Part shown: piece after piece, positions 1 through 50,000 of the stretch
Layout of the letters: every line of letters begins with the position of its first letter
How positions within the stretch are numbered: position 1 is the first letter of the stretch
Assembly: GCA_965153285.1 (NCBI GenBank)
Contig: OZ229111.1
DNA length: 64,000 nt
Reading direction: 5' to 3' (one strand)
Source: Podarcis tiliguerta
Taxonomy: Eukaryota
Notes under the pieces: model-generated
The model's database searches: none
What the model was told of the DNA's origin: nothing
The model's input: the letters and a program-made list of their open reading frames with translations, nothing else
Made by a program: the position numbers and the translations under genes

Positions 1-490
1 TAAAGCTTCTGCATGCTGAAAGTGCTAAAAACTGCCTTCTTTTGGATGCCATTCCACAGCCAGGATTATGTAGGTATAGAGTGAATTTCTTGGGGGAGTT
101 GCTTTGGTTTGTTACTTTTGTATGCATTTTGTTTCAGCTGCCCTGTGATCCTCGGATGAAGGGCCGTATGGAAATTTTAAAAAACAACAACAAGAATACG
201 CTATTACTTCCGCAAGCCCTCGGAAAGAGGCAGGTAAAATGAAATTGCACCGATACTAATGGGTCAGCCTGCCCATGAGATATATGGGTATTTATTTTAG
301 TTCAGAGTGCAAGATTTCTTTTTCAAGTCCTGTAATTTCACCCCCTATAAAACCTTTTAAATCCTTATAAAAGGGTTAGCCCTGCAGAATTGGGGAGTGG
401 GGAAAATACATCCGAGTCAAGCTATTTCTGCAAAGCAAGGCAAGCACTGCTGTGGCTCAGCTGAGTGTCTAAAACCATCCATTTACTTGC

Positions 491-604
491 CTGGTTTAGA
501 TAAAAGTAAGTCTCTGCCTCTTGCAGGTAAAGTTCCTCTTTTTGTCCTACTGGAAGACCACACAGCAGCTCATAAAACACATGAAAGCTCCTTTCACCTC
601 GGCC
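491..604 (-). CDS. MYO15B: MYO15B motor exon ([14 protein letters not shown]...YFYLNQ) with GC donor
   Basis: 114 nt, phase 0-0; acceptor ttttttag, donor CAG|gcaagt. Confidence 0.88.
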
Positions 605-3600
605 CTAAAAAACAAAGAGGAGGTAGCCCTTGCAGATCCACACCATGGGAGGAATTTAACATTCTGCTATTGCAATTGTTATGTCATCTCAGGCTTCTTC
701 GCTTGCCAAACAGAACAATCCTCCTCCTCCTCCTCCTCCCCCCTGCACTTTTTTTTGGAGGTTCTTCTGACTCCAATGAGTCAATATCAGGGGGTGTACA
801 AGGAGAGGGGCGGAAGCCCCATTGCCCTAGTTATTAGGACTTAAGTTGAATCCCACCCCATACATTTAAAGCACATCCAACACACATTTAAAGCATGTGG
901 CTCAGCCCTGAAGAGTCCTGGGAACAGCAGCTTTCCCTTCTTGGAGGACCAATCCCTAGACAGGGAACCAAGCAGAGGGCTTTATCAGTAGTGGCGCCCA
1001 CCCTGTGGAACGCCCTCCTATCAGATGCCAAGGAAATAAACAACTATCTGACTTTGAGAAGGCAACCCTGTTTAGGGAATTTTTTTAATGTTTGATGTTT
1101 TATCGTGTTTTTCTAACATTCTGTTGGGAGCCACCCAGAGTGTCTGGGGAAACCCAGTCAGATGGGCAGGGTATAAATAAATTATTATTATTATTAATTA
1201 TTATTATTATTATTATTATTATTACCGTCACCTTAACAAACTACAGTTCTCAGGATTCTTTAGGGCAGGCATAGGCAAACTCAGTCCTCCAGATGTTTTG
1301 TGACTACAATTCCCATCATCCCTGACCACTGGTCCTGTTAGCAAGGGATTATGGTAGTTGTAGTCCCAAAACATCTGGAGGGCATGTTTGCCTATGCCTG
1401 CTTTAGAGAGAGTCATGGCTGTGCTATCAGTGGATAGTGTGGATCAGCATCGTTCTCTATAACAGGAATATACTACTTGGGAGAAAAAAAGTTACTGACT
1501 GCCAGTTTTCTGAGATTTTAAAATGAACAGTACAGATGGTGGACACAGTGATTGTAGGATACTACTGACTGATGTCTAACTTCACTGATAATCCATGTTT
1601 ATAGACCTGCCCCCCCCCCCCAATTTGCCATGTTCAAGCTTCAGAATTTGCAAGGTGATTCTGTAGACTAGTTACCTTCCCACATGGAGGTGCAGCTTTT
1701 GCTCAAGAGGATGTGACTTCCCACATCATGTGTAGGTGGTATCATAATCATCACCATTAACACCCCAGAGTGGATCACAGGCATTTAAAATACAACAATT
1801 GCAGTCACAAGAATAGGGCGGGTCCTAAAAATTTACATCTCAAGGTATCAAAGGCCAGGGTAAAGGAGAAATATCAAAAGCATCTACAAACAACTAGCAC
1901 AAACTCAGATCTCCACAAATCCTGTCACCCATCCCATTCCCTTTTACCAAAAAAACTCTTCCCTATGTGGGTTTGCAGGTCACACATGGAAGCGGGATTA
2001 CTTAATATAGAATAGTGCGTCTCATGCACACAGGTAATTTATCGGCCATCTGACATGCGAGAACACTTTTGTCCTTACCTGAAAAACAACTCTGGACTTC
2101 TCCAAAAGGTACTGAGAGATGGACGTTCCCACCATAAATCCGCTATGAGGAAGAGATTTCTGTAAGACGAGTCGTTTTATTTTCTGCCCTGACTATAGAC
2201 TTTATGGAATGGGAGGTTTTGTTCAATAATGCAAGGCAATTTTTTGAACACTCGCCATTGAAGAAATAAGGCATTCAGAGGTTTAGTAGCATTCTTAAAA
2301 CACAGGCTCCTGCTCCCCAAACTAATGGTGATTTGTGGAAAACACTGAAATCTCATGGAAAAGTGTCTGAGGGAGGTCTTTTGATTCAAATAAATGCTGG
2401 GGAATACTGACAACTGGCGTCTGAATACTTGGAATTTCAAAGCTGTGGGAGTTTAGAACTCCCTATTCTACAGCAACCAAACCAGCTGACTCTCAAATCC
2501 CTCTAAGTGTTTGAAATGCACAGTGAGACCCGGTCAATGAAAGTATGACATACAAATTAAGGCACATGGTAGTTTTCATGTGAGAAAAACTAAAGATGAA
2601 TCTGTTGTTACTGCACCAGTCTCTTTTACATAATAAATTAAGAAGTACTGTCATCTCCCAAGAGGCACCAGCTTGTAGACCAGAGCTGATTTGCACACTA
2701 TTTCTTAACAGATTTATAATAAGTCAGAAATGGTGAACATCTGGCCCTCCTGTTGTTGTTGTTGTATTCCAACTCCCATCAACCCCAGCCAGAACATCCA
2801 AAGGTCAGGGATGATGGGAACCGGAGTCCAGCATCGTCTGGAGGGCCAATAGTTTTGCCATTCCTGAGGTAAGCCATTTCAGCTCCATTCCTCCTGCTGC
2901 TGGAAGGGAACCTGTCTCCTTGCCCTTGCTCTGGGTGGAGCCCAAGAGAACCAGTCTCTCATTGGAAACGATTCCGAGAACAGCCTCTCATGTGACAGAG
3001 GCAGGCTGTGCTCAAGACTCCTTGGTGCGTCCGTACGGTTCTTAAGAGCAGACAATCATTCCTCAAACAGCAAAGAGAAGCTGACTGGAATCCCTTGGAA
3101 TCGATCCCAAGCATGTGAACATGAGCCAACAGGAATCACTGATAAGGCTATATCCTCCATTAACACATCCACTAGCTTTACACGTTCAGTAAGTTTTTAA
3201 AAAATACATTGTTCCTAATAAAGTTATTACCTTACTGTTGATTTTGCATCCCCCACTATCTATGCTTTTTCTGTTTCAAACAGAAATATTAATTACTTTT
3301 TTTTAACTCACTGTCTTAGGTGGACATGCAAGAACTTTCCAAAGCGGCTGGAGTTGTCATTTAAGATGGTCTTTGCATTTCCAAAACTTTCCAAGATGGG
3401 TAACACATCAGATGGCTGTAAGGACAAGGACAATATTAATATTAAAGATGCTGCCTTATTTTTTTTAATCAATCAATAACATTACATTACTTTTAGTACA
3501 ATCTTATGGGTCCCATTGAGCTCAATGGTGGTTATTCCCAGGGTAAGCGGATATAAAATTCTAATTAATTCATTACCTTTTTTAATGTATTTGCATGGAA

Positions 3601-9600: not shown

Positions 9601-12600
9601 ATTGTCTGGTTTTATGAAATGAGAGAAGGGGGGGGGGGAATATATAGCGTAAGGCTGAGTAAGGAAGAGCTAATGGCGCATTTCCTGGTTTACAAACTGA
9701 AGTTATAGAATAGACATGGCCATTGACTGGAAAGAGGCATTGCAGGAAAGCTGAGAGGAAGGTACATGGAGGACTATATTTGGGGGGAAACGGAGCATAA
9801 TTAAAGACCTGCCTTTTTCCTTTTCTTAAGAGTCTTTATTATTTGGCATAAGCAACTTAATAGCTTTTTTGGTGCTGTGGTCTAAACCACAGAGCCTAGG
9901 GCTTGCCAATCAGAAGGTCGGCAGTTTGAATCCCCATGATGGGGTGAGCTCCCGTTGCTCGGTCCCTGCTCTTGCCAACCTAGCAGTTCGAAAGCATATT
10001 AAAGTGCATGTAGATAAATAGGTACCACTCCGGTGGGAAGCTAAACGGTGTTTCCGTGCGCTGCTCTGGTTTGCCAGAAGCGGCTTAGTCATGCTGGCCA
10101 CAGGACCCGGAAGCTGTATGCCGGCTCCCTCGGCCAATAAAGCAAGATGAGCGCCGAAACCCCAGAGTCATCCTGACTGGACCCAACAGGATTAGCTTGA
10201 TTTTACATACCTGGTATAGATACATCAGCTTGAGGACTGCAAGGAAGCACTTGACTATTCCTTTGGCCATTTGGCTTAGAATATTCATGTTGCAATTTAG
10301 CATCTGGCTGGACAGATATTATTGTTTTCCTGCTTGGTTGATCACATGACTGCAGCTGTGGTCCACTACAGTCAATTTCAAGAGAAGCGTTTTTGGACTT
10401 CACCAACTGATGAACCCTGGGGAACACAATGGCAAACTTGGCATCCGTGATACTGCTTTTCTCTTCCTCGGTTTGTCCACTGAGATTCATCAGCAAAGGT
10501 TTTAAGTTGTCTTCATTACAGGGGAAATTCCTTGAAGACCTTGCCCCTTCTTCCAGTTCTTTGTTCACAACTGTATCTTCATCTCCGGTTTGATCACATT
10601 CTAACAAGGAACAGGAAGACCCTTTTTTACACAAGTGTTTCTTCATTTGCTCCCCTGCTGAGTCATGGAAAGGCCTGCCACATCTCTTGGCCAGCCCAAC
10701 AGTGCCAACAACCCGAATGGCCATTCTTCTCCTGAATCCAAATGATTTGTTGCTCCTCTTCTTCTTGCCAAACTTCTTGAAGAGCCATCCTGAGAGGCCA
10801 ACTGCACGTGCTATGCGTAAGAAGCGCTCTTTCAAGCTTGCTTTCTTGGGAGGCTTATGGCTAAGCCAATGGGTCACTTTCTTAAACGCTGAAAGGGTTT
10901 GTAGAGATTTGGATCTCGTTTGCTTAGAAGAGATTGTGCCTTTTCCGGCAGCATCTTCAACAGTTTGTTCCTCCACTAGCTCCTCTTCCTCTCTTGTCTC
11001 CAGGACCAGATTTGAAGCCATTTTGACATTTCCAGTTACTTTTCCGATTTTCTTTTTCTTTTCAACAGAAAGCTTTCTAGTGTTAACGTTTGAGCTTGAA
11101 GCAGTAGAGAGACTTGATTCTTTAATCTCCTTGGCTCTAGAAACCATTTTGTCATTTCTTTTGGTACTCTTTTTCGGATGAATGCTTCCAGCCTTCTTCA
11201 AATCAGAGCCAATTTCTGCTGCCTTAGGACAACTGCCACTTGTCAATAGTTTGGCTTTAGCATCCTTATGCCTGCTTTTTAGGCTTAGCAGAATTTGGGA
11301 TTGTGAAGTCAGATGGCTATATCTCTTTTCGAGCAAGGCCACTGCATCTACTCTTGAACTTGCATCTCGGCTTGTTTGCTCTTCTAAATGCATGCCTTGT
11401 TTGGATGGATCAGCCTTACCACAATATTCACTTTTGTGCTTTATTAGTTGTAGTGAGGAGGTGGTTGTTTTGTCACTGACACTCAAGTTCTCTTCCGTCT
11501 GGTGGTTCTCTTGAGGATTTTTGTTTGAGCCAAACTTGAGGAGCTTTGATCTTTTCTGGTTTCTACTTTTTCTTTTTGCAAAGCTGCTCGTCTCAGTTTC
11601 CTCCTCTTCACTTCCAGGTATACTCTGCTCATAGTCGGAGGCTTCTTTGCCACTCCCCTTTTCCGAAAGATTTTCATGCTCCCCATCATTGCTCTCTTCC
11701 TCTGTAGGGCTACTACTGCAATTGTCTGAGTTACCACTTTGCTCATCATTATCACTTGCTGTAACTTTTCTTGCCACATATCTTTTATCACTCCCTTTTA
11801 TTTTTTCATCTATCTCAGAGTGACTCTCTTCATTCTCAGCCTCTTGTCTTGCTGCTATGATCTCTGACTTTCCTTCACTTTCACTGGCTGTTTCCTGAAG
11901 TTCTTGACAGTCACTAGTTTTGCCTGCAGGCTGATCTTCCCCAATAGCGGGTAACACTTTCTTAGAACAGAGCTCTTCATCTTCATCTTCCAAAGAGTTC
12001 TGTCTACGCTCTCTGACTTTGAACTTGCCCTTTCCAGTCTCTTTATCTCCCATTCTTTGGTTCAAACTGTATTTATCTTGGGAGTTTGAAGATGATGATG
12101 ATGATGAACCTTCTGAATCCACAGGATTTGCTTTGGAAAGTATTCTAGCTGACTTCCTAGTATGTGTCTTCTTGTACCCTCCACTTTTTTCTCTGGTAGT
12201 CTTACCACTAGCCTTACAGTGAGGCTTCCTCTTATAATGTTCCTTGCTTTCAGTATGACTTCTCTGGTATGACTCTTGCTTCTTCCAAGGGGAACCTTGT
12301 TCATTTTCTATTGCGAGGGACTCAGTATCAGCGATATTCTTTCTCTTGCTTGGTTGCTTCTTACGTTTCCTTTTCAAGTTGTGTTTCTCATTGTCTTCAG
12401 TGTCCTTTGATTCAGCGCTTTTCGCGCTGGCATTGTGCCATTGTCCTGAAATCTGATCATCTTGCCTCACGACCCTTCTTCCGTTCTTCTCTCCCTTGCA
12501 CATTAACTGCTCCCCATGTCTTCTATCAGAATGGCATTCTCTGATCTTGGAACTTCTCTTCTCTTTTCCTTCTTTCTTGAAGCTACTCTTCCTTCCTTCT

Positions 12601-12860
12601 TTCAGCCTTCTCACCTCTCCCTTGCCCTTTGCTGGGCCCTGCACAGAGACAACAGGAACCCCATCCTCATCAGAGGATGAATCTTCAGAATTAGTTCTCT
12701 CATTGCTCTTTCTTTTCTTCAGCCTTCTGTCGTGGTTCTTTGATTCGTCAACATGCTTTTTCTTTTTTCGAGAAACATGTGCTGTTATTTCCTGGCTGCC
12801 ATACTCAGCTTTCTGTTCTCTGGATGTTTTGCGTTCTGCTTTAGACCGAGAAGGTGCCAT
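491..12860 (-). CDS. MYO15B: Unconventional myosin XVB, 5' part (10 coding exons, 1220 codons; gene continues beyond the left edge)
   Basis: Phase-consistent exons 12860-10211, 9069-8750, 8656-8595, 8370-8307, 7684-7575, 4857-4783, 3831-3735, 3415-3312, 2142-2079 and 604-491. Myosin motor motifs present: [23 protein letters not shown]-loop [48 protein letters not shown]. Giant N-terminal exon typical of class XV myosins; lies directly downstream of LLGL2 in the same orientation, as MYO15B does in human. Confidence 0.9.
960..1222 (+). mobile_element. L2-type LINE 3' fragment with (TTA)n tail
   Basis: Encodes [14 protein letters not shown] (L2 ORF2 C-terminus); 3' end shared with the copies at 9235, 33581, 43958 and 50217. 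Confidence 0.8.
1266..1400. mobile_element. hAT-type palindromic MITE (about 135 bp)
   Basis: TIR CAGGCATAGGCAAAC; 8-bp TSD ctttaggg/ctttagag. Confidence 0.85.
2079..2142 (-). CDS. MYO15B: MYO15B motor exon ([21 protein letters not shown])
   Basis: 64 nt, cctcatag / gtaagg, conserved YLLEKSRV. Confidence 0.92.
3312..3415 (-). CDS. MYO15B: MYO15B motor exon with switch I ([20 protein letters not shown])
   Basis: 104 nt, ttacag / gtgagt. Confidence 0.93.
3735..3831 (-). CDS. MYO15B: MYO15B motor exon with P-loop ([12 protein letters not shown])
   Basis: 97 nt, ttttccag / gtatgt. Confidence 0.93.
4357..4491. mobile_element. hAT-type palindromic MITE
   Basis: TIR CAGGCTTCCTCAACCTC; TSD tgctagat/tgctagtc. 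Confidence 0.82.
4783..4857 (-). CDS. MYO15B: MYO15B motor exon ([24 protein letters not shown])
   Basis: 75 nt, ttgcag / gtaaga. Confidence 0.92.
5441..5711 (-). mobile_element. tRNA-derived SINE (Squam3-like) with (TTC/CTC)n tail
   Basis: Minus strand begins ccagtgtggtgtagtggttaggagcggtggactc...ccgggttcac (A/B boxes) and ends in a CTT/CTC microsatellite. Confidence 0.75.
7575..7684 (-). CDS. MYO15B: MYO15B motor exon ([20 protein letters not shown]...)
   Basis: 110 nt, ttcctag / gtatgt. Confidence 0.92.
8307..8370 (-). CDS. MYO15B: MYO15B motor exon ([21 protein letters not shown])
   Basis: 64 nt, cacccag / gtatgg. Confidence 0.9.
8595..8656 (-). CDS. MYO15B: MYO15B exon at the start of the motor domain ([21 protein letters not shown])
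   Basis: 62 nt, cttccag|ATG ... ga|gtaagt; VEDLSRL matches the myosin VED(M/L)xxL motor start. Confidence 0.88.
8750..9069 (-). CDS. MYO15B: MYO15B N-terminal extension, second exon ([10 protein letters not shown]...MDMMQKQ)
   Basis: 320 nt, phase 1-0, cttctaag / gttggt; bridges the giant exon and the motor in frame. Confidence 0.8.
9235..9363 (-). mobile_element. L2-type LINE 3' end fragment
   Basis: Matches the 3' end of the 33581 element. Confidence 0.7.
9871..10186 (+). mobile_element. Sauria-type SINE
   Basis: ggtgctgtggtctaaaccacagagcctagg...cagaaggtcggcagtttgaatccc head; body shared with the other copies. Confidence 0.85.
10211..12860 (-). CDS. MYO15B: MYO15B giant first coding exon (about 883 aa, K/S/E/R-rich N-terminal extension, starts [11 protein letters not shown])
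   Basis: Part of the 901-aa ORF 10203..12908. Acceptor tatatag at 12866-67, ATG 5 nt into the exon, donor CAG|gtatgt after 10211. Confidence 0.85.
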
Positions 12861-13206
12861 TCTTCCTATATACGTAAGCACACAATCTATTAAGAGGAAA
12901 GATGTCATATTCTATGTGCAATGAATGTGCAAGTATTTTTTTTTTTAAATCCACAAATCACCTGAAGAAGGGATGGCCGATTTCTTATTATCTGGATTTT
13001 TTATTCTCTATTCTCCAATGGTCTAAGACCTGAAACTGTATTTTGTCACACCCCTTTGCTGATGTGGGCAGCTTGATAGCAAAACTGATGTCACATAGCA
13101 GTAAGGACACCACAATTATGGAACTGCTCAGTCATGCCTATGGCATCACAAACAAAACTGACATGGAAATGTTACACTGAAGTATGGAACTTCTCTTACA
13201 CATGCA

Positions 13207-20318: not shown

Positions 20319-20510
20319 CAGTGGTACTTCAGGTTAAGAACCTAATTCGTTCTGGAGGTCTGTTCTTAACCTGAGGTACCAGTTTAGCTAATGGGGCCCG
20401 CCGCCGCGCGATTTTTGTTCTCATCCTGAGTCAAAGTTCTTAACCTGAGGTACTATTTCTGGGTTAGCGGAGTCTGTAACCTGAAGCGTCTGTAACCCGA
20501 GATACCAATG
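20319..20510. mobile_element. Tc1/mariner-type MITE (family shared with 29224, 35770, 38613)
   Basis: TA + CAGTGGTAC TIR; shared internal sequence. Confidence 0.78.
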
Positions 20511-21999
20511 TTTTTGTGTGTGAGAAACCTGCCTGCTCCCCCACCTACCCCCACAAAAAATCCTGGAGCTATCCACAACTTTAGGGTAACAATACTACTA
20601 TTTAAAAAGAAAGTAGGTTCTAGTCACTTGTTCTTCAAAGGAAACCTGAGGTGGGATGATAAAATATTCATGTCCAGGGAAAGAAAACCAAACCAATTAA
20701 GCAACACAGGTTGGAAAAAGTCCTCCTTTAAATATTTCACTCGCTCTTTGTTGCCTAATTGTCAGCTGCTCTGTAAGGTTCAAGGGAGTAATCCTGTGGT
20801 AATGAGAGCCATGTCTCTCCTTCTCTCTGTCTCTCTCTCTCTCCCTCCCACCCACACAACATAGCCAAGGTCATGGGGCCGGCCATCTCAGCTGAAGTGT
20901 TGTTTTGCCTGCCGGTTAGGAGCTCATGTTGCACATTAAACTGCGATGCTCTGCTACTAGAGGAGTCATTTGCCTACAACACTTCTTCACTGATGTAATT
21001 AGAAGACAGCGCAGCGCAGCTGTTGGAGTGGCTCGGTTGGGCTCTCTTCCGCCTCAAGAACATCCGCGCAAATAGTGTGAAAGGGGGATGGCACAGTGTC
21101 ATAGGTAAATGCGCCCACTTCATAGGACAAGATTGCAGGAAATGGAAACGGGGATTGCGGTGGGTGGGGAGCGCACAGGAACTGCTTAAGTGCCTGAGAG
21201 CTTAGTCCTGAGAAGCAGAGCCAACTGAATTACTCCCAAACGGATAGGATTACGACTGCCATGGCCACATCTAACAAAAGCACAATGCAAAGGTATCAAA
21301 TCAGATCCTCTTCAGCCTGGGGCCTAATGTAACCTGGCACACAGACAAGGGGATGCGACAAGCAGCGGAGATATTTAATGCTTATTCTAGCACTAAACGC
21401 TGCAGCTTCCCATGGCTATGTGGGAGGACATCTTATCCAAAAGGAGTTTGGAAAACTTGCAATGGCCTCTTAATTGAGTTCTTTTTGGCGGGGGGGGGGG
21501 CCTTACCTAGTGACTGTAAACAGAAGTGGTGCATACCCGTTATTTTACGATGCTCTCTTCTGTTATGAAAGCTGTTGGCACCAGATAAAATTATGCATTC
21601 AGAAACAGTATTGCTACTGTAAACACACATTGGGCGGTGGAGGCTGGTCACTGTGGCGGAGCCTTCCCTCCTGAGAAGAATGTTAAAAAAAAAAAAAATC
21701 CCTCCCCAGCTTTCCTGTCTCAGACACATTTTGTACTTTCATTTTCACTCAGAGAAGCTCTTCAAACATTGTTAACTTTTTACGGATAATTTTATTCTTT
21801 CTCTTTTTGTAAACTGCTTTGATTTCTCTCTCCTCCCCCCCCCCCCTCATGGTGTATAAATTGAAAAATAAATAAATAAAGGTAATTAGTTCTCTGGCTA
21901 ATTAGGTCTCTGCAGCACTCAGCCACTGCTAATCCAAAAGTGTAGCTATGTTTTTAAAAAGTCCCCACGTACCACGTAACTGATATTGGAATTAAAGGT

Positions 22000-22499
22000 A
22001 AACTGATTTTATTTAAATCAAATTGATTTAAATGACTAGACAGTAAGGCTTGATTAAATCATTTTTTTATAGAAAGACTCATTCTTGCTGGTATAATATT
22101 AATATTAACAAGAGATGAAGGCTTCATTTTTTTTACAGTTATATGAACAATTACTTATTTGGTTATACTGTACTATTAGAAATACAAAGACAGGTAATTA
22201 TGAAATTGCTTATATTTTGACTCTTCAGCTATACTTTACTAAAACAATAACATAGCATATGTATCCATGTTTGTTAACTGATGTGGTTAAATGTTTTTTT
22301 TTAAAAAAAAACAACCAGACTGAGTTGAAGTTTAATATGAAAAACTTAAAACAAATCCTTATTTCCTGATGAATAGCCTTTGGACTATAATGTAACTTAA
22401 ATGGAAAACTATCTTTAGAAAGGTGTTTCCTCCAAAAGCATTTTTTTTAAAAAAAAATCTGATTTATTTATTTTAAATCATTAATTTCTATCCACCCTG
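22000..22499. mobile_element. Degraded AT-rich DNA transposon remnant (hAT-like)
   Basis: Ends in ...ttctatccaccctg with repeated gattt/aaatc subterminal motifs; left end not clear. Confidence 0.35.
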
Positions 22500-22912
22500 C
22501 TCAGAACGGTTTTCTTGAAAGCCACACCTCAAAACACATTCTTCATAGCTATCTAGGAAGAATGTGTGTGGTTACTAATTTGAGCATCTTGTTTTCAAAT
22601 TAATATTTGTTGAGAGCAATGGTGGACAGTGTGTGTCTTTGTAATATCTATTTTCCACTTATTTTTGTGAATGGGTAAGAGGATTGGAAGGAGAAATGGT
22701 GGGTGTCTTCTGTGTGTGTTTTGCAACTTTCAACACTTGTGTGTTACTGGAACTGTAGGATTTGTGATAAGTATGGAGGTTTTGCATTCCTGTAAGTCAA
22801 TTATTGGTTTAGTTAGGTCCTAAGTATTTGTACAACTACAATGCGTAAGTATCCACAGAATCTTTGCAAAGGCAAGATGGGGAGAAAACCAGAACAACTG
22901 GTCATGCCCCTG

Positions 22913-23257
22913 TGACCTCACTGGCCACACCTCCATGACTCCAGCCACCACTAACACTCAGTAGTCAAGACTTGCCAGCTGCAGCTTTGGCAAGTGGTCA
23001 GGTCACATAAATAGTACACCGTGGGTTTGTGAACAGTTGTGAGCAACTGTCCAAGTTACTGACATCAGAGTGCTTATGACATCGGGAAGCCTGATCCCTC
23101 TTGTCCCAACTGCTATTGCTGTGATGGCTTAGGCCAAGAAGCTTGTTTGAGACTGGTGAGATCTAGAATGCGTGTGGTTGCCTGGCAACGCTACAGCTAT
23201 TCCTTGCAGGTCAATTCGAGACTCCATTTTATCACCCCCTTATTAAATTGCACGTCA
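22913..23257 (+). promoter_or_regulatory. Candidate promoter, 5' UTR exon and first intron of the 285-aa ORF
   Basis: TGACCTCA 22913, CATAAATA 23006, TGACATCA 23060, TGACATCG 23077, donor CTG|gtgaga 23156, X-box GTTGCCTGGCAAC 23177-89, CACGTCA 23251. Confidence 0.45.
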
Positions 23258-23315
23258 GAAAGTTCTTTCACTTATTTTTCCCCCCGTCTCGCTCTTTGAA
23301 ATCACAGATCCTTGC

Positions 23316-24173
23316 ATGGAAACGAGAGCCATTCCAGGGAAGGAAGCCGTGTGCCCAAGTGATGTAGGAGGGCCCAAATCCAGCCGGGAGAAGTTTCTTC
23401 AAGCGTGGTATGAAAAACGGAAGCCCCAGACACACCCCACCGTGTCGTCTCAAGTGTCAGGGTGTGGGTCACCAGCTTGTGCTCCAAGCCAGGAGAATTG
23501 GACAAGGGACACATCCTTGTCACGTGCCTTTTTCTACCTGATGGTGGTGCCTCCCCCTCAGGCGCAATTGTACGCAAGTAGCCGGATGACGGCACAGTGC
23601 CCCCGCCAAAGAGACTTGCATCATGTGGCCCAAGAGCTGGAGCCGGAAGCAAATCCCAAAGAGGAATTCCTGCAGATCTGCGCTTCAGATTTGCTGCTCA
23701 AGTCTGCAGAGAGGAAGAGGCCACGGCTGCTGCCGCCAAACCGTAAGATGCACGTGGAGGTGTTGAAGAGGCAGGACTCGCCCCCACTGCAAGAGTGCCA
23801 AAGAAGTCCTGTCCCCCTGGAGTACAGCCATCTGATCGATGCCATAGAGATGACTAATCTGGCAGACCTTCCCGAGATAGAATCCTTCTATCGAAGTTTC
23901 ATTCTCGGGCAGAAACGGAAAGGATATTCCAGGAGGGATGGGCAGCTTCGCCTACAGGCAGAGTATCGGCTACCTCCCAGGGCCACAGAACCACCTTCCT
24001 GCCAACAGGGTGCCAGGAGAACCGCCAGGATGAGATGCACACAAAACCGGAAGCTGAGCCTGAAGAGGAGCGCTCCTCTGTCTGAGCTCACAGTGGCGAC
24101 CAAACGGTCTGTGGACTCTTCTCAAAACGGCCACCTTCCGCCAAAGAAAAGATATACCCAAGGCTTCTTCTAG
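23316..24173 (+). CDS. Uncharacterised 285-aa basic protein, single coding exon, C-terminal HLPPKKRY
   Basis: Longest ORF in the window not explained by MYO15B, LLGL2 or repeats. GC/CpG-rich against AT-rich flanks; polypyrimidine tract plus cag acceptor at 23305-07, 8 nt before the ATG (gcATGG); AATAAA at 24315. Confidence 0.7.
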   Translation: METRAIPGKEAVCPSDVGGPKSSREKFLQAWYEKRKPQTHPTVSSQVSGCGSPACAPSQENWTRDTSLSRAFFYLMVVPPPQAQLYASSRMTAQCPRQRDLHHVAQELEPEANPKEEFLQICASDLLLKSAERKRPRLLPPNRKMHVEVLKRQDSPPLQECQRSPVPLEYSHLIDAIEMTNLADLPEIESFYRSFILGQKRKGYSRRDGQLRLQAEYRLPPRATEPPSCQQGARRTARMRCTQNRKLSLKRSAPLSELTVATKRSVDSSQNGHLPPKKRYTQGFF

Positions 24174-24314
24174 GGACACATGCTGCAATATTGGCAGTGT
24201 ACTAGGAGCAGTCGGTACACAGGGTTTTTAAATTGGGGAGGATTTTCCTTCTCCTTTTATATATATATGTATATATATTTATATATTTTAGCATAGTCCC
24301 TAACTGAGGTATTT

Positions 24315-24320
24315 AATAAA
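24315..24320 (+). terminator. Polyadenylation signal of the 285-aa ORF gene
   Basis: AATAAA about 140 nt after the stop, followed by T/GT-rich sequence and a second AATAAA. Confidence 0.55.
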
Positions 24321-25139
24321 GTAAGTTAATTTTGTACTTTTCAAATAAACTCTTTTTAATGTTTGTATATTTACTTCCTGGTGCCTTTTCGTCATTTTCG
24401 CCTCTCTACACATACTTAAGAGCAAGTTCTTGGTGGTTCGCGCTGCGATTCCCATTTTTACAAAATGGGAACAGATAAATAATCTTCCCAAGATTTTCTT
24501 AGTCCCCTGCCTGCAGAATCTAAACCTAGCTCTAGTCTCCCTCGCAGTACTATACAGGCCCCTTCATCAGTTTATATTTCTTCATATATGGAGGAATAAT
24601 TTTTTAAAAATAAGATTCATTTGATTACAAGGCATTTTTTACCTTGCCCTGTAACAAAGCAGCTTGTTTGTAGGTTTAGTAAGGATAATTTTTATCATTA
24701 TCACACACTTCATTCTCTGGGTGTTATACTGTGTTTTTGATTGGTGCATAGAATCAAACCTAAATTAATATGATCTGTTACCTTTGGAAGGTTAGGATAC
24801 AGTTGGGATTCCACCTTTGGTCCAGTAAACTGGACTAGATTGAGAAAATTGGTAAAATCCCCTGGAAAGCAACCTAGAAAGGCATTAGGCAATTACACTG
24901 AAAGGCTGAGTGGTCTATAATAAACCCTTCCAGGTGAGATTTATCTGCCTTTCACAGAATGTGGGGAACTCATGGCTTATAGAACAAGTTTCATGTGACC
25001 ACGGAAAGCACTACAAGCATCTAAGTGAAGAGGCTCACTTCCCGCGCTGCAGTTGCAAGGCTGTTAAACATTTCAGAGGGCGTCAAAATGAGGCAACAGA
25101 GTTTCTTGGTCAAATTAAAAAGCATGTTAAAAGTACGGG

Positions 25140-25562
25140 TTTATTTCACAACAGTTCAATGTAGTGTCCACACACAAATCAAGTTAAATTTGATTAATTT
25201 TTCCAGCTCTGATCAGCTACAGAAATAAGAATCTACCTGAGTCTGCAAAACTACTTAACAGTAACATGACCAAAAAACCCCACACCCCTTGCAATTTCCT
25301 CATTTGAAGGAGAAAAAAAAAGTTACAGCAGCCACAGGAATCTAAAATGACATATATTATTTCATTCAAGATTTTTTTTTTTAAAAAAAGAACTCTTCTA
25401 AAATATATCTATTGAACAAACACCCAGTATGATTTTTTTTAAAAAAAATGTACAAAAAATAATCTTAGTCAGAGGTAACAGTATTTATTTTTTAAAAAAA
25501 TCTCTGCACCCAAGGCAGTAATATTTATAATTTAAAACCCATCCCAGTAGAAATCTTTTATT
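25140..25562 (-). terminator. LLGL2: Candidate LLGL2 polyadenylation signals
   Basis: Minus-strand AATAAA at 25557-62, 25484-89 and 25140-45, downstream of the stop at 25872. Confidence 0.45.
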
Positions 25563-38095: not shown

Positions 38096-41000
38096 TACCA
38101 TACTTTTCCGTGTATAAGACTAGGGGTTTTTTAATTATTAAAAAATGATGTTCAAAATTGTGGGTCGTCTTATACACAGATAAAATCTCCCCCCATTTTC
38201 TCAATTTGGAGTCCCCCAAAATAGAGGACGTCTTATACATGGGGGTGTGTTATACGGTAATATGCATGTTAGCTGGTGTCAGGTGGTTTTAATAAAAAGA
38301 AGTCAAGCCAGTTCCAAAAAAAAGCCATTTCTTATAGGGATGCTTGCTTTGAAGAAGAGAAACTATTTTTGAAAAATAGAATGCTTTAAGGCCATGTAAT
38401 GAATCCTTTTGCATCTCTTTATGATGGCAGAAGACTAAGTTTGCCGTACTCCAGGAAACCGGCACAATTCTCCTCCAAAAGGATTAGCCTATAGCTGCCC
38501 GAATCTCCTCCTCATATGACATATCAATGCCATGAGTGGCAAGGCTGAGATCCAATACTGTACAAGGGGGATTTTTCTAATGTCATGAGTGGCACCAGAG
38601 CTTTGCTGAATACAGTGGAACCTCGGGTTAAGAACTTAATTCGTTCTGGAGGTCCGTTCTTAACCTGAAACTGTTCTTAACCTGAGGTACCACTTTAGCT
38701 AATGGGGCCTCCTGCTACCGCTGCGCAATTTCTATTCTCAACCTGAAGCAAAGTTCTTAACCCGAGGTACTATTTCTGGCTTAGCGGAGTCTGTAACCTC
38801 AAGCATCTGTAACCTCAAGCGTCTGTAACCCGAGGTACCACTCTACGTGAAGCCGAGACAGCGCAGCCCCTCACCTCTGCAGTTCGTCGCTTTCTGTTAG
38901 ACACCCTGCTCCTTCGCATTCGTCGGAAGGACTGGCGGAGGGACTTCTTTAAAGACTTCACTCTGGAAAGAGGGCCTTCCAAGGCCAGTTGGTCACTGGG
39001 ATGCAAGGTACACCTAGAAGGAAATTAACAGGGTTGGCTCAGGTTCCCTTTTTAAACCAAACTGTTTTTTGGTCAAGTTGCAGCCACACACTGGAAGCCC
39101 ATTAAGAGAGTTACCACATTTTAAAGCGCAGAGGTCTGAAATACCGTGCACAGGCATAGGCAAGGCCTTTAGTTGCTTTGCATCAGGGGTAAGAAACTGT
39201 AGCCCTGCAAATACTTGTTGGACTGCAGGTCTCATAATCCCTGCCCATAGGCTATGGCTGATGGGACTTGGGAGCCCAACATCATCTGAGGTGGCCATCC
39301 CAGATGTAAAGCAACATGGGACAATGCTGCTGCTTTTTGCCTGCAGTTCTCAAACCAGGCAAGAGAGCCTTCAGAAAACCAGAACTATTCTGAACTGCAC
39401 ACTTTATATTGTTCACAGTATTTGCTTTTGTGGAATGTTGGCAATTACTAAAGTTTTCCTAGAAGGCTCTAAAGGTATTCCATCAGTAAAATCCATTTCG
39501 GTGTTTCTCAACAGCCATGAGGATTCAAAGTAAATCTGATGGTGTGTTTTTGTTTTCCTTTTCAAAAACAGTGCTACACTGCCTTGCCCTTACATTCCAC
39601 AAGGATTATACTATTTAGGGTTTACGTAGCACTTTAAATGCATTACTTTGATGATTTTTATCACTCTGTAGGACACACCAGTATTAATTTCGCGGAAGTG
39701 TACTGTAACATTTGTGGGGGAAACCTTCTCCCCATAATGCTCAGGAGGAAGGGAGGGCTCAGCCTCCCTTTGTCCCCAAGGCAACAAAAGGGAGACGAGA
39801 AGACCTTTGGACTTCAAGAGAGCACGCCTGCCTGAGCCTAATAGTGTTGACTAAGCTGTGGTCAGGAAACAACTTCCTGCTTTGGAGTTATGGTAATCCT
39901 CGGCCGCCAGGGATGGATCTCAGCATTTTGTGGGGGCTAGGAGGAAGGCAGAGTTCTCTCCAACTCCCCAATTCCTGAATATGTTGGGGGTACCTGCTGC
40001 CTACCCACCCCCACGCAAGTGGGGCTTTGTAACTTGAGAGAAAAGTCGAGAAAGAGCCATTATGACAGAAGCATATAACGTGACGCATGGTGTCCGTATA
40101 GAAATAGGGGATGAGGAAGTTTTTCCTCCCTCTCGCCTATAACACTAGAACTCAAGGACATCCAGAGAAGCTGAACGCCGGAAGATCCAGGACAGACAAA
40201 ACAACTTCTTAACACAGTGCGTATTTAAAACTATGCAACTTGCTCTGGCAAGACGCCATGAGGGCCACCATGATGACTTTAAAAGAGGATTAGATAAATT
40301 CAAGGAGAGGGATAAGGCTGTCAGTGGCTACTAGCCATGACAGCTCTGCGCTGCCTCCACTGTCAGAGGCAGTGTGCTTTTGAATGCCACTTTTCAGGAA
40401 ACTGCAGGCGGGGAGAGCGTTGCTGTGTTCAGCCCTACTTGCAAGCTTCCTATGGCATCTGGAGGGCCACTGTGAGAACCCGCTTAAACAATCAGGAGAA
40501 GCTATTGCAGATCTAAGCCTAAGGCTGGGAGGAAAATGCTTTGCCTAAGTAATTTCCTGCCCGAACTTTTATCCAGGACTTCCAGTTCACTGGTTGAACC
40601 CTTAGCACTATGCCTCACCAGTCTGGCAGGAAAACCCTGTTTAAGCACGTGGCTTTTGAAAATGGCTGGATGTTCAATGCAAGACTTTCACCTAAACCCT
40701 ACACTGTGTCAGGAATACAATTTAAAAATTATCTCAATCAGGAAGTAACCCCCTTACTTGACAAAGACCAGCCGCTTCTGCTGATGATCAAAGAGCCCAA
40801 AACCATGGCTTGTACCAAAGGCTACGAGTTTCCATTCCGAGTGAAGGGCCAGCGAAGTGACCACAGCTGGCGGCTGACACTGGACCAAGACAAAGGGCTG
40901 GAAGCCTGGCTCAAACCGAACAGGCCCGTCTTTAGTTTTGAGCCGCTCGTGACCTTTCCACCTATAGCCTTCCTGATCCTGGAGGAGGTCCGCCTCTGAA

Positions 41001-44000
41001 TGGTCAACCACCTGCTCTGCTTCTTCGTCATTTAGCTCCATTACGAGTACCTGGACGGGGGGCAGGGTAGGGAAAAGGGAGAAGGTCATTTGGAAGTGTG
41101 TTTTGAAACCTTAGCATTGCAAAACCCACAGAGTTTGTGCAAGAACGAAGGCCAGGACAAATGCATTTCCTCCTCTGGGCCTTTACTCTCAAAAGCATTG
41201 AGGAATACTTTTGCATTTCACTTATATCCTTCCTCACTCGTTTTTCAACATCACGTCAGCAGCAGGGGAGTTTGAGCTAACCCAATTCACTTTTTGATTA
41301 AGTGTATTAACACCCTCCTGCAGCATAATGAACTTTGAAGCAAAACAAAAGAAAAGAGGTTGTAGGCTTATGTAATTATGCAACAGAGGCAGTCATTTAC
41401 CAAGTGGCTCTTGTAGCACACTGTGAATCTAAGCAGCATTAGCAGTCTTATTTCAATTTATTTCTACCCCACCTTTTCAGATACTTTCAAGGCAGCTTTT
41501 GAAAGTGATAGGCAGAACATATAATCAAAAGAAGCAGCAAAACCCAAATACAGTGGAATGTAAGGACAACACCATTTAAAAAAACAACAGCAACAACCAC
41601 CGTTCATGAATATCTTATCACTTTGGCAAAAATAATCTTTATGTTTCTGCCCTGCAGCAATGCTAAATCTATCCACTGCTTTCATTTATTTCTGACCTAA
41701 TGTGGACAAGATTCTCTGCCCATAGCTTTGGCAGGACATTTTGCTTGAGAGGCCTGGCAGTTACATGCACAATAGACTGAGTTACCCATTTGGTTCATGA
41801 TGATTTGCACTCACCCATTCGAAGTCTTTAAAGAGCAGTAGAAGAGTCATAATTCAGAAAACTACATGCTGCTCCTTTCTCATCACAGGTGGGCTGGGCA
41901 AGTTGCTAGCCCTGAGGCAAAGCAGCTCGTTTGGCAATCCAATGTGAACTGACATTTGCGGCCAATGCCCACATGACTCAAGCAGGCGTGTTGTTTTGGT
42001 TTTTTGAAAGAGCTGCATGACTCCTACAAGTGCAGTGGGAATCTACTCTGAAGAGTGTGTTTCGGATGCCAGGAGCCGGTGTATATTATTATTATTATTT
42101 ATTTTGATTTATTACCTGCCCTGACCTTAAGGTTCCTGAACAGGTCGCAGCAATTTAAAAATGCAACATTGAAGGTGATCTGATACAGTTCAAAGTTAAG
42201 AAAGCCAAAAAGAAGAGGATTGGGTGCGTCACAGCTGAGAGCCCAAGAGCAAGTTGTAACTATCTTCTAACCTGAATTAAGGCTCTTTGAAAAGCTTTGC
42301 ATTTCACAGGAGAAGACATGCAAATTTGTCCCCATACCCTGCCCCCCCCCCCCCCGTTGACATAGATGAACTTCTTTATCCAATTATATGGGGCAGAGCA
42401 TCTGTGAACCCTGTCTATGCCCTGGCCTTCCACAGTCTAAACAGCAACAAAGGCTTTCAATAGGCCAGTGGTGCTGAGGCAGGAATTGTCAAAATGTCTT
42501 CCATGGAAAGGGCCACTCTATCCCAAATCAGTAATTCAAAACTAAGGATTCTCCTTGGTGCTCTCTGACAGGGAATTAAAGAGCAGAGATAGAAAAAAAT
42601 TAAGTTGCAAGCTGGAAACTAGCCCAGAAAGTTTGCATTGTCAACACAGTCCACTGACTAGTGGAATGGTTCGCCTAGTATCAACTTAGCGACTTAATCT
42701 TTCCTATAGACATTGCCGCATATACAGACATATATACACACATTCCTACTAGATATACTACTACCAGCATCCAGCTGGCCAAGAAACACAATGACTTAGA
42801 GAGCGAACAAATTCAAATTGAAAACCCAAAGATGAACAAGCCAGAACAACAGCTTAACTAGTGATCGGCTGCACAGCTGGCAGTTACAAAGGTGAAGATG
42901 GTACAAAACACACGCGGAGAAATTTGCACATGACGGTATCTGAACATGTACAGAATGCTTCCTACACTCTGCAGATCACTAGGATTGGGAGAAAAGTTTA
43001 TGTAGAACACAGGGCATAACATGCAGGGAAGTTCAAACTCCTGCATTTCCCAATTGATGGGGGCAAAAGATAAAGTAAGGTCTGTGCTATTGGATGCAGT
43101 GTGCCCAAAAACCTATCCAAGTGCATTTCAGTACCTGCCCTGCTGTTCCTGCCACGGCCAAGTAGCTACTGTATTTGCACAAGAAGATCTTCTGGATCCC
43201 AAGTCTGGGGTCATCGCTGTAAGGGTCAAAGGAGCCAACCTAGCAGGGCAAACAGGCAAGAAAGAAAATACCATATCAACACAAAGCAAGGTTTTCTGCG
43301 GGGCAGCTTCTCTGCTGCTCAGTTCAGCAGGCCTTGGCTTCGGAAGGTTTAAGCTGGGCCACGGACTCCTCACCTTGCGCAGCGGAGGCCATTCGTCCTC
43401 CCCCATCTGGTTCAGATTGTCATTGGGATCAGCATCCGTGAGGAACACCCTCACCGTGCTCAGCTTATACAGGAGGTTCAGACAAACGCCGGACGCGTTC
43501 CAGAATCGTACTGTGCCATCCTCATGCCTGATTTGGGGGGGGGGGGAGAAATGAAGGGGGCAAGCAGATTACACCAGCAGCACGGCTTACTTTCCAGGTA
43601 AGTGAACACACTGAACATTTGCCACATGAGCCACTGAAATCCTTTTGGGCTAATTGTTTAAATACAGATAGCCCAGGCGGCTACAAAACTTTCCTCCTTC
43701 GTGATCCCCTTTCTGCGCTGACTTGACTGCTGGAGAACTGATGCACACCAAAGGGGATTCTGGTGGAGTGAAGAGCCAACTCACACATGCAGAACCTCAC
43801 TGCGGCCCAGTACAAAGGAAAAGTATAAACCCAGAACCACACCCCTGTGTCTGCACATTGCAAGGAAATGTCTGCAATGGTGGCAAAGGGTCTTTCGAGG
43901 AAGCTTGCCTGCCACTGCTTCCAAGCCCAGCGGGGAAGCCTAGACTTTTAGAAGATACCCAAAGGCAGCCCTGTTTAGAGAAGTTTTTAATTTATGATGT

Positions 44001-47000: not shown

Positions 47001-50000
47001 CAAATTAAAGTTATTAAATTTCTGAATTCTGTGACAAGTTGCGCAGGCAAACTAACAATATAATTCAGCATGTTTTCTTGTGCAGTACATTGTGCAGTTT
47101 GGAAGCACGTCAAAGTGCAAGTAGATAAATAGGTACCGCTCCGGCGGGAAGGTAAACGGCGTTTCCGTGCGCTGCTCTGGTTCGCCAGAAGCGGCTTAGT
47201 CATGCTGGCCACATGACCCGGAAGCTGTATGCCGGCTCCCTCGGCCAATAAAGCGAGATGAGCGCCGCAACCCCAGAGTCGGCCACAACTGGACCTAATG
47301 GTCAGGGGTCCCTTTACCTTTAACATTGCATCCTACACGTGTTTAACACTTCAGCAATTTCAACCATATGCTGTTGAAGGCCGCTGATTGCAATCCCGCA
47401 AATTAAAAGCAAGCAAAGCAGAGAGCTTTTTGTGGTGCGTTTTCCTAGCATGAAAAGAGAATTTAAGCTCTCTGTCTTGCTTGGGAAGCAAGGCCCTCTC
47501 CACGCACCAGGTCTGAGATGCCCCTGTGCAAGATGTCATGGGAACTTGGAAAGACCTGCAAGATCTCACTGGAGCACCCCAGGACCTCTAGAGTCAGTGA
47601 ACATAGAAGGCCTTGCTCCCCAAAGGAAGGCAGAGACCTTAAAAAATGCATTATTCCTAGAGTGCCCCAGGACAAGAGCGCCAGTGTGGTGTAATGGTTA
47701 GCGTGCTGAGCTGGGACCTGGGCCAGTCATGAAAGCTCACCGGGTGACCTTAGGCTAGTCTCTCACAGCCTAACTTATCTCACAGGGTTCATTACAAAGA
47801 TAATAGGGGAGAAGAGCCACATATGCCAATCTGATCTTCTTGGAAGGATAAGCAGGATATAAATGCAATAAATGAGATAAGCAAGCAGATTTGGGTCTGG
47901 GGGCCATAATTATCTTTGAGTACTCTTTGCAAGATTACATCGCTGAAACGGCCTCATCCTTTGCTTGTGCCTTCTATCTCTCAAGCGGGACTTCAGATGC
48001 AGTGTGAAATCCAGTATTAATATGAAAGGGACTCGTTCATTCCGTTCCAACGTTCATGCATGCAAGTCATACCATATTAGAGAACTGGGAGTTCTGTTTA
48101 CTCCCGGCACTGATGATCCTTTCCCATAACTTGAGAGGGATGTTGGAGACGTGGTGGGAACATGTGATGGCTGAACAGTGAAGAGATGCCAGGTACGGGG
48201 GTTGGACCGATGGCCAGCCTGGAGACATCAAGTCTATGACTACTAGCTCTTCCTCTGCTAGCACCACCATGGCAGATGGGTCATCAAATTCTGCAGGAAA
48301 AGGAATCAATAAATAGCCATCATTTCACTGGGGGGGAGGCAGCAGGGAGAAAATGATCGTGAAGTACTTTCATCAGTGGGCACAAATAAGCAGCATGGTT
48401 TATCTAGGCTGGTGGCTCAGCAATATTAGTTACATTATGGATCTTGAAATAATCACACAATTCCTCCCCTTCTCTACCCTTGTCTCTATTTTCATCCTTC
48501 CACCATTGCTTCCATGGGTCTAGTTTAGACCGCACATCCCCCGGAAAAGAAACCAGTCAGACCTGCCCCTGGCAAAAAAGAAAATATAAAGATGGTACTA
48601 TATACATTTTATTTATTGAATTTCTATCTTTTCCTTTCTCCCAATGGAGGCAAATAACAATACAATTTTAAAAAAAGAAAGAAGACACGTATGTAAAACA
48701 TTTAAAACGGATTAAGAACATATAAAATATTTTCAAAAGCACATTACGCCTGTGGTTTCGCCAATTGCACCGTCTCCCCCATTTGTTCCAGGGCTCAAGT
48801 GAAAGTGTTGATTTCGGCTTCAAAGCCCTTCACCAGAACAATTTGCTTTCATGTGCGGCCACATGAAGCGGGAAACAGACGGCTCTGCTCGGTGGTTCAC
48901 TCCAATTGCAGAATACTCTCTTCAAGGGAGCAAAGGTGGACTTTGGTCTTTCAAATTTCAGTAGTACACTGTGTGAGACCAAAATTCGGTGTCCCTACCT
49001 TTCGCCTTCCATTCTGCGCATGCACTGCATCATAGTTACAGCACCCCCCCTTGGCTTGGTGCCCAGTGCGAGGGAACCAACCGCACTGCCCTAAATCTGG
49101 CTCTGAAGGGAGGCCCGACTAGAGCTTAATCTGGTGTCTTTTTGGCAGTAGGCAAAAACATTTTTTCCCCCAGTCAAAAAAGTAGTTTCAAAAGCTTTAC
49201 GCAGAGTAGAGCCATTGAAATTCATGAACTTAGGCATGTTTATTAATTCCAGTGGGTTTTACTCTGTGTCAAACTTAGCTGATGGGCTCCCCACCCTGCG
49301 ATCATCTGTGCTTTGTTTTTAAGCTGCTTTGAATTTTTGTTTTTACTCCCGCTTCCTTTATGCTGCTCTTTTATATTACAGCGTTTTCATGTCTGCTTTC
49401 ATCTTCACTGTATTGAAATGTTCACTTTGAAAGTTGCCTGGAAACCTGCCGAAGGGCAGCGTATAAATTCTTCAAAAACAACAACAAAGTGCACGTCTCT
49501 GAAGAGCAAGTTTTATTTTTCTGCCCAATCCAAGTTCCTGTGGCGCAATCGCCGACACCCCTAATAGGCCATTTATGTGCTTTATCCAAGATTATCTATG
49601 GAGTAAAAAATGTCACGTGAAATGACCGAGAACTGGAAATCAAGGACCCGATGCAAGCAGGTGGGCTATGTGACTCTTTTCATCTGCCATCCTTTAACGG
49701 GTAAAAGACAGGCTGCATTGTGCATGCTCAGCAGTGACCCAGTTAGTGGTATGTTAGACCATTTCTAGGAACTTAGGCCAATCCCAGCAAAGTAAGCTGC
49801 TTAAAATGTAACAGCGTTGCTGGTTCTGAGAGCGGTTGATCCGTTTGAGAACAAGAAGAATTTCATTACAAACGGAAAGCCGCTTCTGAAGCCAGCTCCA
49901 GAAACTCATCACTGCTCTGCTTTTGGAAAGCAAAATGCACAATGTGTCACAGAATCACATGTCGTATTGTTTTCCGTTATAAATGAACTTGGCAAAAGGT

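Follow-up and report, generated by a model that had tools for sequence, protein, structure and literature searches.

A compact gene beside LLGL2 in Podarcis tiliguerta, probable orthologue of an old and uncharacterized vertebrate family

A compact reading frame at the locus

We analysed a stretch of 64,000 nucleotides of contig OZ229111.1 (assembly GCA_965153285.1) from Podarcis tiliguerta, hereafter the window, in which a compact reading frame lies on the plus strand between LLGL2 and a myosin-XV-type gene. What it marks is a true protein-coding gene, small in size and opposite in strand to both neighbours. Very probably it is the local orthologue of an old, single-copy and vertically inherited vertebrate family, a real, conserved and transcribed gene. 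It is already present in public annotation, where its reptile, salamander and coelacanth entries bear no other title than 'uncharacterized protein LOC...'; its existence being public, what is added here is the description of the family. The features of the gene are listed below by position in the window, with a slash marking splice sites in the donor and acceptor sequences.

20926 to 21104, plus strand: alternative far-upstream 5' exon, donor ATAG/GTAAAT, from the isoform X1 model of Podarcis muralis
22896 to 23209, plus strand: 5' non-coding exon, minimum extent, from a contig of run X1 (described below), with weak depth back to 22755
23210 to 23307, plus strand: intron of 98 nt in the 5' untranslated region (UTR), with GT...AG ends and a run of pyrimidines ahead of the acceptor, from a spliced contig end
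23308 to 24340 (3' end approximate), plus strand: main exon with an 8-nt leader, the coding sequence and a 3'UTR of about 150-170 nt, from a 1018-nt contig
23316 to 24173, plus strand: coding sequence, 285 amino acids plus TAG, from the scan of open reading frames (ORFs), with 95% identity to P. muralis LOC114590618
24315 to 24349, plus strand: two AATAAA signals, from the motif scan

The coding sequence runs over 285 codons from ATG to TAG within a single exon, and it is embedded in a 308-codon open stretch, the longest one without stop codons in the neighbourhood. When positions 23006-24350 were subjected to 2000 mononucleotide shuffles, the longest open stretch was 108 codons on average and at most 236. 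The GC content of the ORF is 0.55 against 0.28-0.46 in the flanks, and its observed to expected CpG ratio is 0.52 against 0.07-0.38; the window sequence contains zero N letters. An earlier interpretation of the locus made from the letters alone (the sequence-only reading) had described an 858-nt ORF ending at 24173, richer in GC and CpG than its surroundings, and on both counts it was right, with an ATG-to-TAG frame never equalled in the shuffles.

Members, distribution and age of the family

A word-indexed protein search returned 19 matches, which were assembled into alignment A1, and the A1 profile was run with HMMER against all 1.84 billion cluster representatives at E ≤ 0.001; these searches covered predicted proteins, not genomes. 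The 'uncharacterized protein LOC114590618' of Podarcis muralis shows 95% identity to the window protein (E 6e-177), Lacerta agilis LOC117039121 shows 83% and Rhineura floridana 54%, with the turtles Chrysemys and Pelodiscus at 40-52% and snakes (pythons, elapids), geckos, Hemicordylus and Pogona at 37-46%. Most amniote members have E values between 6e-177 and 1e-26 and a coverage of 92-100% (60% in Pelodiscus). Latimeria chalumnae LOC106705162 was matched over the central 33% of the protein, about 90 alignable residues, with E 1e-6. The profile search gave 15 proteins, the new ones being Anolis LOC103277830, Phrynocephalus, Chelydra, two salamanders and a few transcriptome-type sequences. Both salamanders, Pleurodeles waltl (E 5e-29) and Ambystoma mexicanum (E 1e-23), were reached by a profile built without salamander sequences. 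A word search with the broader alignment A2 (26 sequences) found no further members. The bacterial 517-aa repeat protein P0027 (E 2e-4) was rejected as a chance match, about 24 profile positions being matched six times.

Four sequences of Logan/ENA origin, P0015, P0024, P0025 and P0028, also belong to the family. P0028 is a very divergent short form of 146 aa that carries block B (see below) and a terminal PKKR, and its E value of 6e-4 places it at the detection limit. P0015 stands outside every named clade in the tree; it could come from the tuatara or a crocodilian, and no claim of absence is made for those two groups.

Lacertoids, snakes, iguanians, geckos, scincoids, turtles and salamanders each form a supported group in the maximum-likelihood tree, and each named species contributes one locus, with no paralogue in any of them. 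One sequence per species and a species-like tree indicate that the family is single-copy and vertically inherited, and with members in the coelacanth and in salamanders it arose no later than the base of the sarcopterygians. A family as old as the coelacanth-tetrapod ancestor rules out a newly arisen gene. With significant similarity, blocks B, C and D present and a single copy following a species-like tree, the window gene can be placed in the RefSeq orthologue group of LOC114590618, LOC117039121, LOC103277830, LOC112058983 and LOC106705162.

The sequence-only reading had presented the gene as unrecognised and as lineage-restricted or newly arisen. The first description gives way to the RefSeq LOC entries in P. 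muralis, L. agilis, Anolis, Rhineura, Hemicordylus, turtles, two salamanders and Latimeria, and the second to the homologues in snakes, geckos, turtles, salamanders and coelacanth. Its remark that no protein-coding gene is known between the two neighbours in human agrees with the protein searches, in which no mammalian relative was detectable. Those searches yielded members in squamates and turtles, in two salamanders and in the coelacanth, and no protein from birds, frogs or teleosts. In the literature we found no report combining LLGL2, MYO15B and synteny, and none citing any of six LOC identifiers of the family.

Conservation is concentrated in four blocks, separated by fast-evolving linkers:

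23370 to 23423, plus strand: block A, residues 19-36 (PKSxREKFLQAWxEK), a predicted amphipathic helix conserved in amniotes
23658 to 23768, plus strand: block B, residues 115-151 (EEFLQICASDLLLKSAERKRPRLLPPNRKMHVEV), an acidic/hydrophobic strand, KRPRLLPP and an MHVEV strand
23805 to 23903, plus strand: block C, residues 164-196 (PVPLEYSHLIDAIEMTNLADLPEIESFYRSF), two predicted helices
24132 to 24158, plus strand: block D, residues 273-281 (HLPPKKRYT), from the alignment

Block B, with the pattern ICxSDLLL-x5-(R/K)KRPRLLPP-x3-MHVEV, is the best conserved part of the family (mean conservation 0.74-0.83), and block C follows the pattern PVPLEYSHLVD...ADLPEVESFY. Residues R135-P140, M145, E189 and L274-Y280 are invariant in A1, and P276-K278 (PKK) shows no variation across the 26 sequences of A2.

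The patchy distribution of the family admits two explanations. Neither the A1 profile against the 1.84 billion representatives nor the two word searches returned a mammal, bird, frog or teleost protein, and we tentatively read this as a sarcopterygian orphan family of ancient origin, encoding a new module for partner binding (strand, KRPRLLPP loop, strand, two helices) and a fixed C-terminal LPPKKRY, that would have been lost independently several times, in mammals, birds, frogs and possibly teleosts. The other explanation is that orthologues exist in these groups and have either diverged past HMMER detection or escaped annotation, the patchiness being an artefact; we consider it unlikely, although it deserves serious weight. 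The protein does evolve fast, falling from 83% identity between Podarcis and Lacerta to about 45% across squamates, P0028 was recovered only at the limit of detection, and the searches covered predicted proteins only. However, blocks B and D are almost invariant from coelacanth to lizards and should be visible if present, none of the 15 profile matches came from the missing groups, and the A2 word search added no member there either.

Gene model and transcription

The Logan contigs of run X1, from a related lizard referred to here as organism A, were mapped onto positions 20500-24500 of the window. Depth was confined to 22755-24320, besides a weak bin at 21706-21839 and a dispersed repeat at 21974-22509, and it was zero at 20500-21705, at 22510-22643 and past 24385. 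A 1018-nt contig with a depth of 49 corresponds to 23305-24320 and takes in the entire ORF, continuing through the 3'UTR as far as the first AATAAA, at 24315; a second copy of this signal starts at 24344. Another contig is colinear with 22896-23209, reading through position 23156, and at 23209 runs on for 27 letters that have a unique placement at 23308-23334 with two mismatches, both of which give residues of the P. muralis protein. This is the only spliced contig, and it joins 23209 to 23308 with donor TTGCAG/GTCAAT and acceptor CACAG/ATCC. The acceptor at 23307/23308, 8 nt ahead of the ATG, is used both by the transcript contig and by the P. muralis gene model. The gene is therefore transcribed in a related lizard, in at least two exons of which the second holds the entire coding sequence. 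In a second relative, one run has small contigs within the ORF.

An unspliced run X1 contig covering 23180-23334 shows that the 98-nt intron is sometimes retained. Its depth of 25 is similar to the 16 of the spliced 5' exon, suggesting either frequent retention or a transcription start within or near the intron. Retention has no effect on the coding sequence, and an in-frame stop codon lies upstream of the ATG whether the intron is removed (TAG at 23164) or kept (TAA at 23244). The 5' exon contains five short upstream ORFs.

These data revise the 5' end of the gene model while leaving the remainder in place. The acceptor at 23307, the ATG 8 nt downstream, the AATAAA at 24315 and a 3' end near 24340 had all been anticipated, the last agreeing with a contig that stops at 24320 and the lack of depth past 24385. 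In the junction expected between 23155 and 23308 only the acceptor is used: the contig is colinear through the supposed donor at 23155/23156, so the true donor is 23209/23210 and the intron measures 98 nt instead of 152. The TATA-like sequence CATAAATA is indeed present at 23006, but it lies about 110 nt inside a contig that starts at or before 22896, and hence does not mark the only start of transcription and probably not the main one.

The alternative upstream exon of the P. muralis isoform X1 model received no depth from run X1. In the window its frame is stopped at codon 50, and it is non-coding here; the N-terminal extension of that isoform is thus not conserved even within Podarcis, and the ATG at 23316 is the start of the family. 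The exon lies in a GC-richer island at 20750-21500 (GC 0.48-0.51, CpG observed to expected ratio 0.44), possibly a bidirectional promoter that also serves the myosin-XV-type gene on the minus strand.

A compact gene with its whole coding sequence in one exon could be a processed retrogene, copied from a multi-exon parent and provided with a promoter later, and the sequence-only reading had kept retroposition among its options. We regard this origin as very improbable, given the spliced intron in the 5'UTR and the alternative upstream exon, gene ends free of poly(A) tracts and target-site duplications, and the lack of a paralogue or parent in any species in the protein searches. Moreover, with the family dating back at least to the sarcopterygians, any retroposition would be ancient and untraceable.

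Selection on the reading frame

The 28 substitutions of the organism A contig, which also has 2 unlocated gaps, were applied to the window ORF. Judged on substitutions alone, the frame stays open in organism A, with 17 amino-acid changes. The rates of synonymous (dS) and non-synonymous (dN) divergence between the two sequences are 0.055 and 0.027, giving an omega (dN/dS) of about 0.5. Blocks B and D are free of amino-acid changes, and block C has three, all conservative. The stronger argument for selection is the maintenance of a full-length frame and of fixed motifs in more than 20 species over several hundred million years, the time given by usual estimates for the coelacanth-to-lizard splits.

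The dN/dS comparison proposed with the sequence-only reading is thereby answered only in part, the ratio being below 1 by a small margin while the ORF is open in four lacertid sequences. It leaves some room for the view that the lacertid ORF is a decaying or functionless relic, open by chance: omega comes from 28 substitutions only and is not clearly below 1, and divergence is about 3% in the ORF against about 1.3% in the 5' exon. Such a relic is nevertheless hardly credible, because the frame stays open over all or nearly all of its length in the window, organism A (by its substitutions), P. muralis and L. agilis, the amino-acid changes avoid blocks B and D, the gene is transcribed and spliced, and an open stretch of 308 codons was never reached in the shuffles.

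Genomic neighbourhood

The neighbours were identified through a motif scan and a search against the sequences of the Protein Data Bank (PDB); Pfam scans of 40 long stop-free stretches, aimed at the identity of the neighbours, gave no match.

425 to 3394, minus strand: left neighbour, motor exons of a myosin-XV-type gene, from the motif scan and PDB sequence search
35215 to 58678, minus strand: right neighbour, LLGL2 exons, from the PDB sequence search, with further LLGL-like exons recognised by eye

On the right, the minus-strand exons at 43131-43568 and 48070-48324 match human LLGL2 (PDB 6n8p) with E 1e-25 and 4.5e-36, respectively, and are closer to LLGL2 than to LLGL1; the minus-strand open stretch 38818-39024 presumably corresponds to the conserved aPKC phosphorylation-site exon of LLGL proteins, which it resembles. 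On the left, the minus-strand exon at 425-604 has unconventional myosin-XV as its best match (7r91, E 8e-10), and myosin switch-1 and LESFGNAKT motifs occur at 3335-3394 on the same strand. The gene is therefore head-to-head with the myosin-XV-type gene and tail-to-tail with LLGL2. Of the placement proposed earlier, opposite in strand to LLGL2 and MYO15B, the LLGL2 side is confirmed by its exons, and the exons on the left are matched as myosin-XV-type.

A 902-codon open stretch on the minus strand (10206-12911), lying past the myosin motor exons and short of the GC-rich region near 21 kb, is of low complexity and rich in K, S and E; neither a Pfam family nor an ESM Atlas neighbour was found for it. 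MYO15A has a large N-terminal exon, and by analogy the stretch may represent a giant exon for the N-terminus of the myosin-XV-type gene, or else a separate gene.

AT-rich dispersed repeats with T8A8 palindromes bracket the gene at 21974-22509 and at about 25360-25500, both outside it. The summed depth of the first reaches about 390 and is very high in all four runs, RNA-seq reads included. Despite these very-high-depth repeats on either side, an ORF derived from a transposon or repeat family can be dismissed almost outright: in the four runs the ORF lacks the very high depth of the flanking repeats, it has no transposon domain in Pfam, no terminal inverted repeat, long terminal repeat or target-site duplication surrounds the gene, as the sequence-only reading had already noted of transposon hallmarks in general, and each named species has one orthologue in a species-like tree.

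Predicted structure of the protein

The protein has an isoelectric point of 9.75 and a net charge of +17, and is rich in R, P, S and Q. Pfam assigned the ORF to no family (the best match, PTP_tm at E 0.28, is a sub-threshold chance match), a profile search of PDB sequences gave no relative (best, GINS PSF2 at E 1.2, taken as chance), and the ESM Atlas provided no usable match. AlphaFold2 with the family alignment produced a model with a mean predicted local distance difference test (pLDDT) of 55 and a predicted template modelling score (pTM) of 0.21, about half of the residues being below 50. Its confident elements coincide with the blocks: a helix at 23-34 (pLDDT about 85), strands at 117-122 and 146-151, and helices at 168-175 and 182-200. 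When residues 109-200 were folded alone, the mean pLDDT was 70.7 and the pTM 0.31, with the strands predicted to pair. Foldseek found no related fold in the PDB for the full model (best E 1.9), and an exhaustive VIA-align scan with the model of residues 109-200 returned generic helical hairpins only (best Z 3.1).

The models are consistent with a mostly disordered protein carrying a modestly confident module at residues 115-200. This agrees with the expectation of a basic, low-structure protein with two acidic/hydrophobic blocks, both of which turned out to be conserved ones; the structure prediction suggested along with it gave disorder and local elements at the conserved blocks, and no fold match.

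Discussion

The family described here extends from coelacanth to lizards, is single-copy, evolves fast outside its three fixed motifs and has no known domain or fold. The motifs offer some hints about its function. KRPR at residues 134-137 fits the K[KR]x[KR] pattern of a classical nuclear localisation signal (NLS), and R135-P136-R137 are invariant in A1. The product would be a basic, largely disordered nuclear protein, with KRPR of block B and the terminal PPKKR acting as putative import signals. The module at 115-200, with its two paired strands and two helices, and the N-terminal amphipathic helix might fold upon binding a partner. Such a protein would serve as an adaptor or regulator rather than as an enzyme, its linkers being free to change fast while the motifs are held fixed. 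As a whole, this nuclear disordered adaptor is a plausible proposal at somewhat under even confidence, drawn from motif patterns and from the way such proteins generally behave rather than from homology.

Several known short motifs were considered for the conserved segments and rejected. A PIP box at LPEIESFY loses its aromatic pair in salamanders and Latimeria; an RVxF site at HVEVW has the wrong spacing, and lacertids lack the W; a Ku-binding A-KBM at RKRPRLLPP has no W after LP; a WW-binding PPxY at PPKKRY has the wrong spacing; and a Cy/RxL site at RLLPP is a loose pattern match only.

A number of observations weigh against the picture of a conserved, transcribed gene with a nuclear product. 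Two bulk RNA-seq runs of the second relative, 12% of each being sampled, had zero reads on the gene, which implies that expression is low or tissue-restricted. The labelling of run X1 as RNA is a guess, its RNA nature being deduced from exon-only coverage and a single 27-letter spliced end. Omega falls below 1 by no more than a slight margin on the short Podarcis branch, with 17.5 of the 28 changes non-synonymous. As for the product, PPKKRY departs from the strict classical NLS consensus, the low pTM values (0.21 and 0.31) mean that the module at 115-200 may amount to local secondary structure only, and function and localisation are suggested by motifs alone.

These points notwithstanding, an old vertebrate family with a local orthologue in the window is very probably what the locus holds. 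Conserved genes absent from the main model organisms are seldom studied, and this one is apparently missing from mammals and birds. If the multiple losses are true, the family would represent a dispensable nuclear function, perhaps linked to the germline or to regeneration, unseen in mammalian biology. Both axolotl and Anolis carry the gene and are genetically tractable, which makes its function directly testable. Any such work can start from the corrected 5' gene model, with its donor at 23209/23210, its 98-nt intron and a transcript start upstream of the proposed TATA sequence.

In comparison with known systems, the protein resembles in kind the small basic intrinsically disordered nuclear regulators, which work via short linear motifs. 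The likeness is one of kind only, none of the named members being matched by sequence, profile or fold; it comprises the basic isoelectric point, the low structure, the K[KR]x[KR] pattern and the short acidic/hydrophobic segments. Within the family, Latimeria LOC106705162, Pleurodeles and Ambystoma have block B (ICxSDLLL...RKRPRLLPP...MHxEV) and block C in common with the window protein, as well as the terminal LPPKKR(Y/F), whereas their N-terminal halves and linkers are unalignable and block A is absent or weak. The nearest counterparts are P. muralis LOC114590618 and L. agilis LOC117039121, models that have neither name nor domain. Unlike the window gene, the P. muralis isoform X1 model has 64 extra N-terminal residues from the upstream exon, but the start of the coding sequence, the splice acceptor and the C-terminus of both lacertid models are the same as those of the gene in P. 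tiliguerta.

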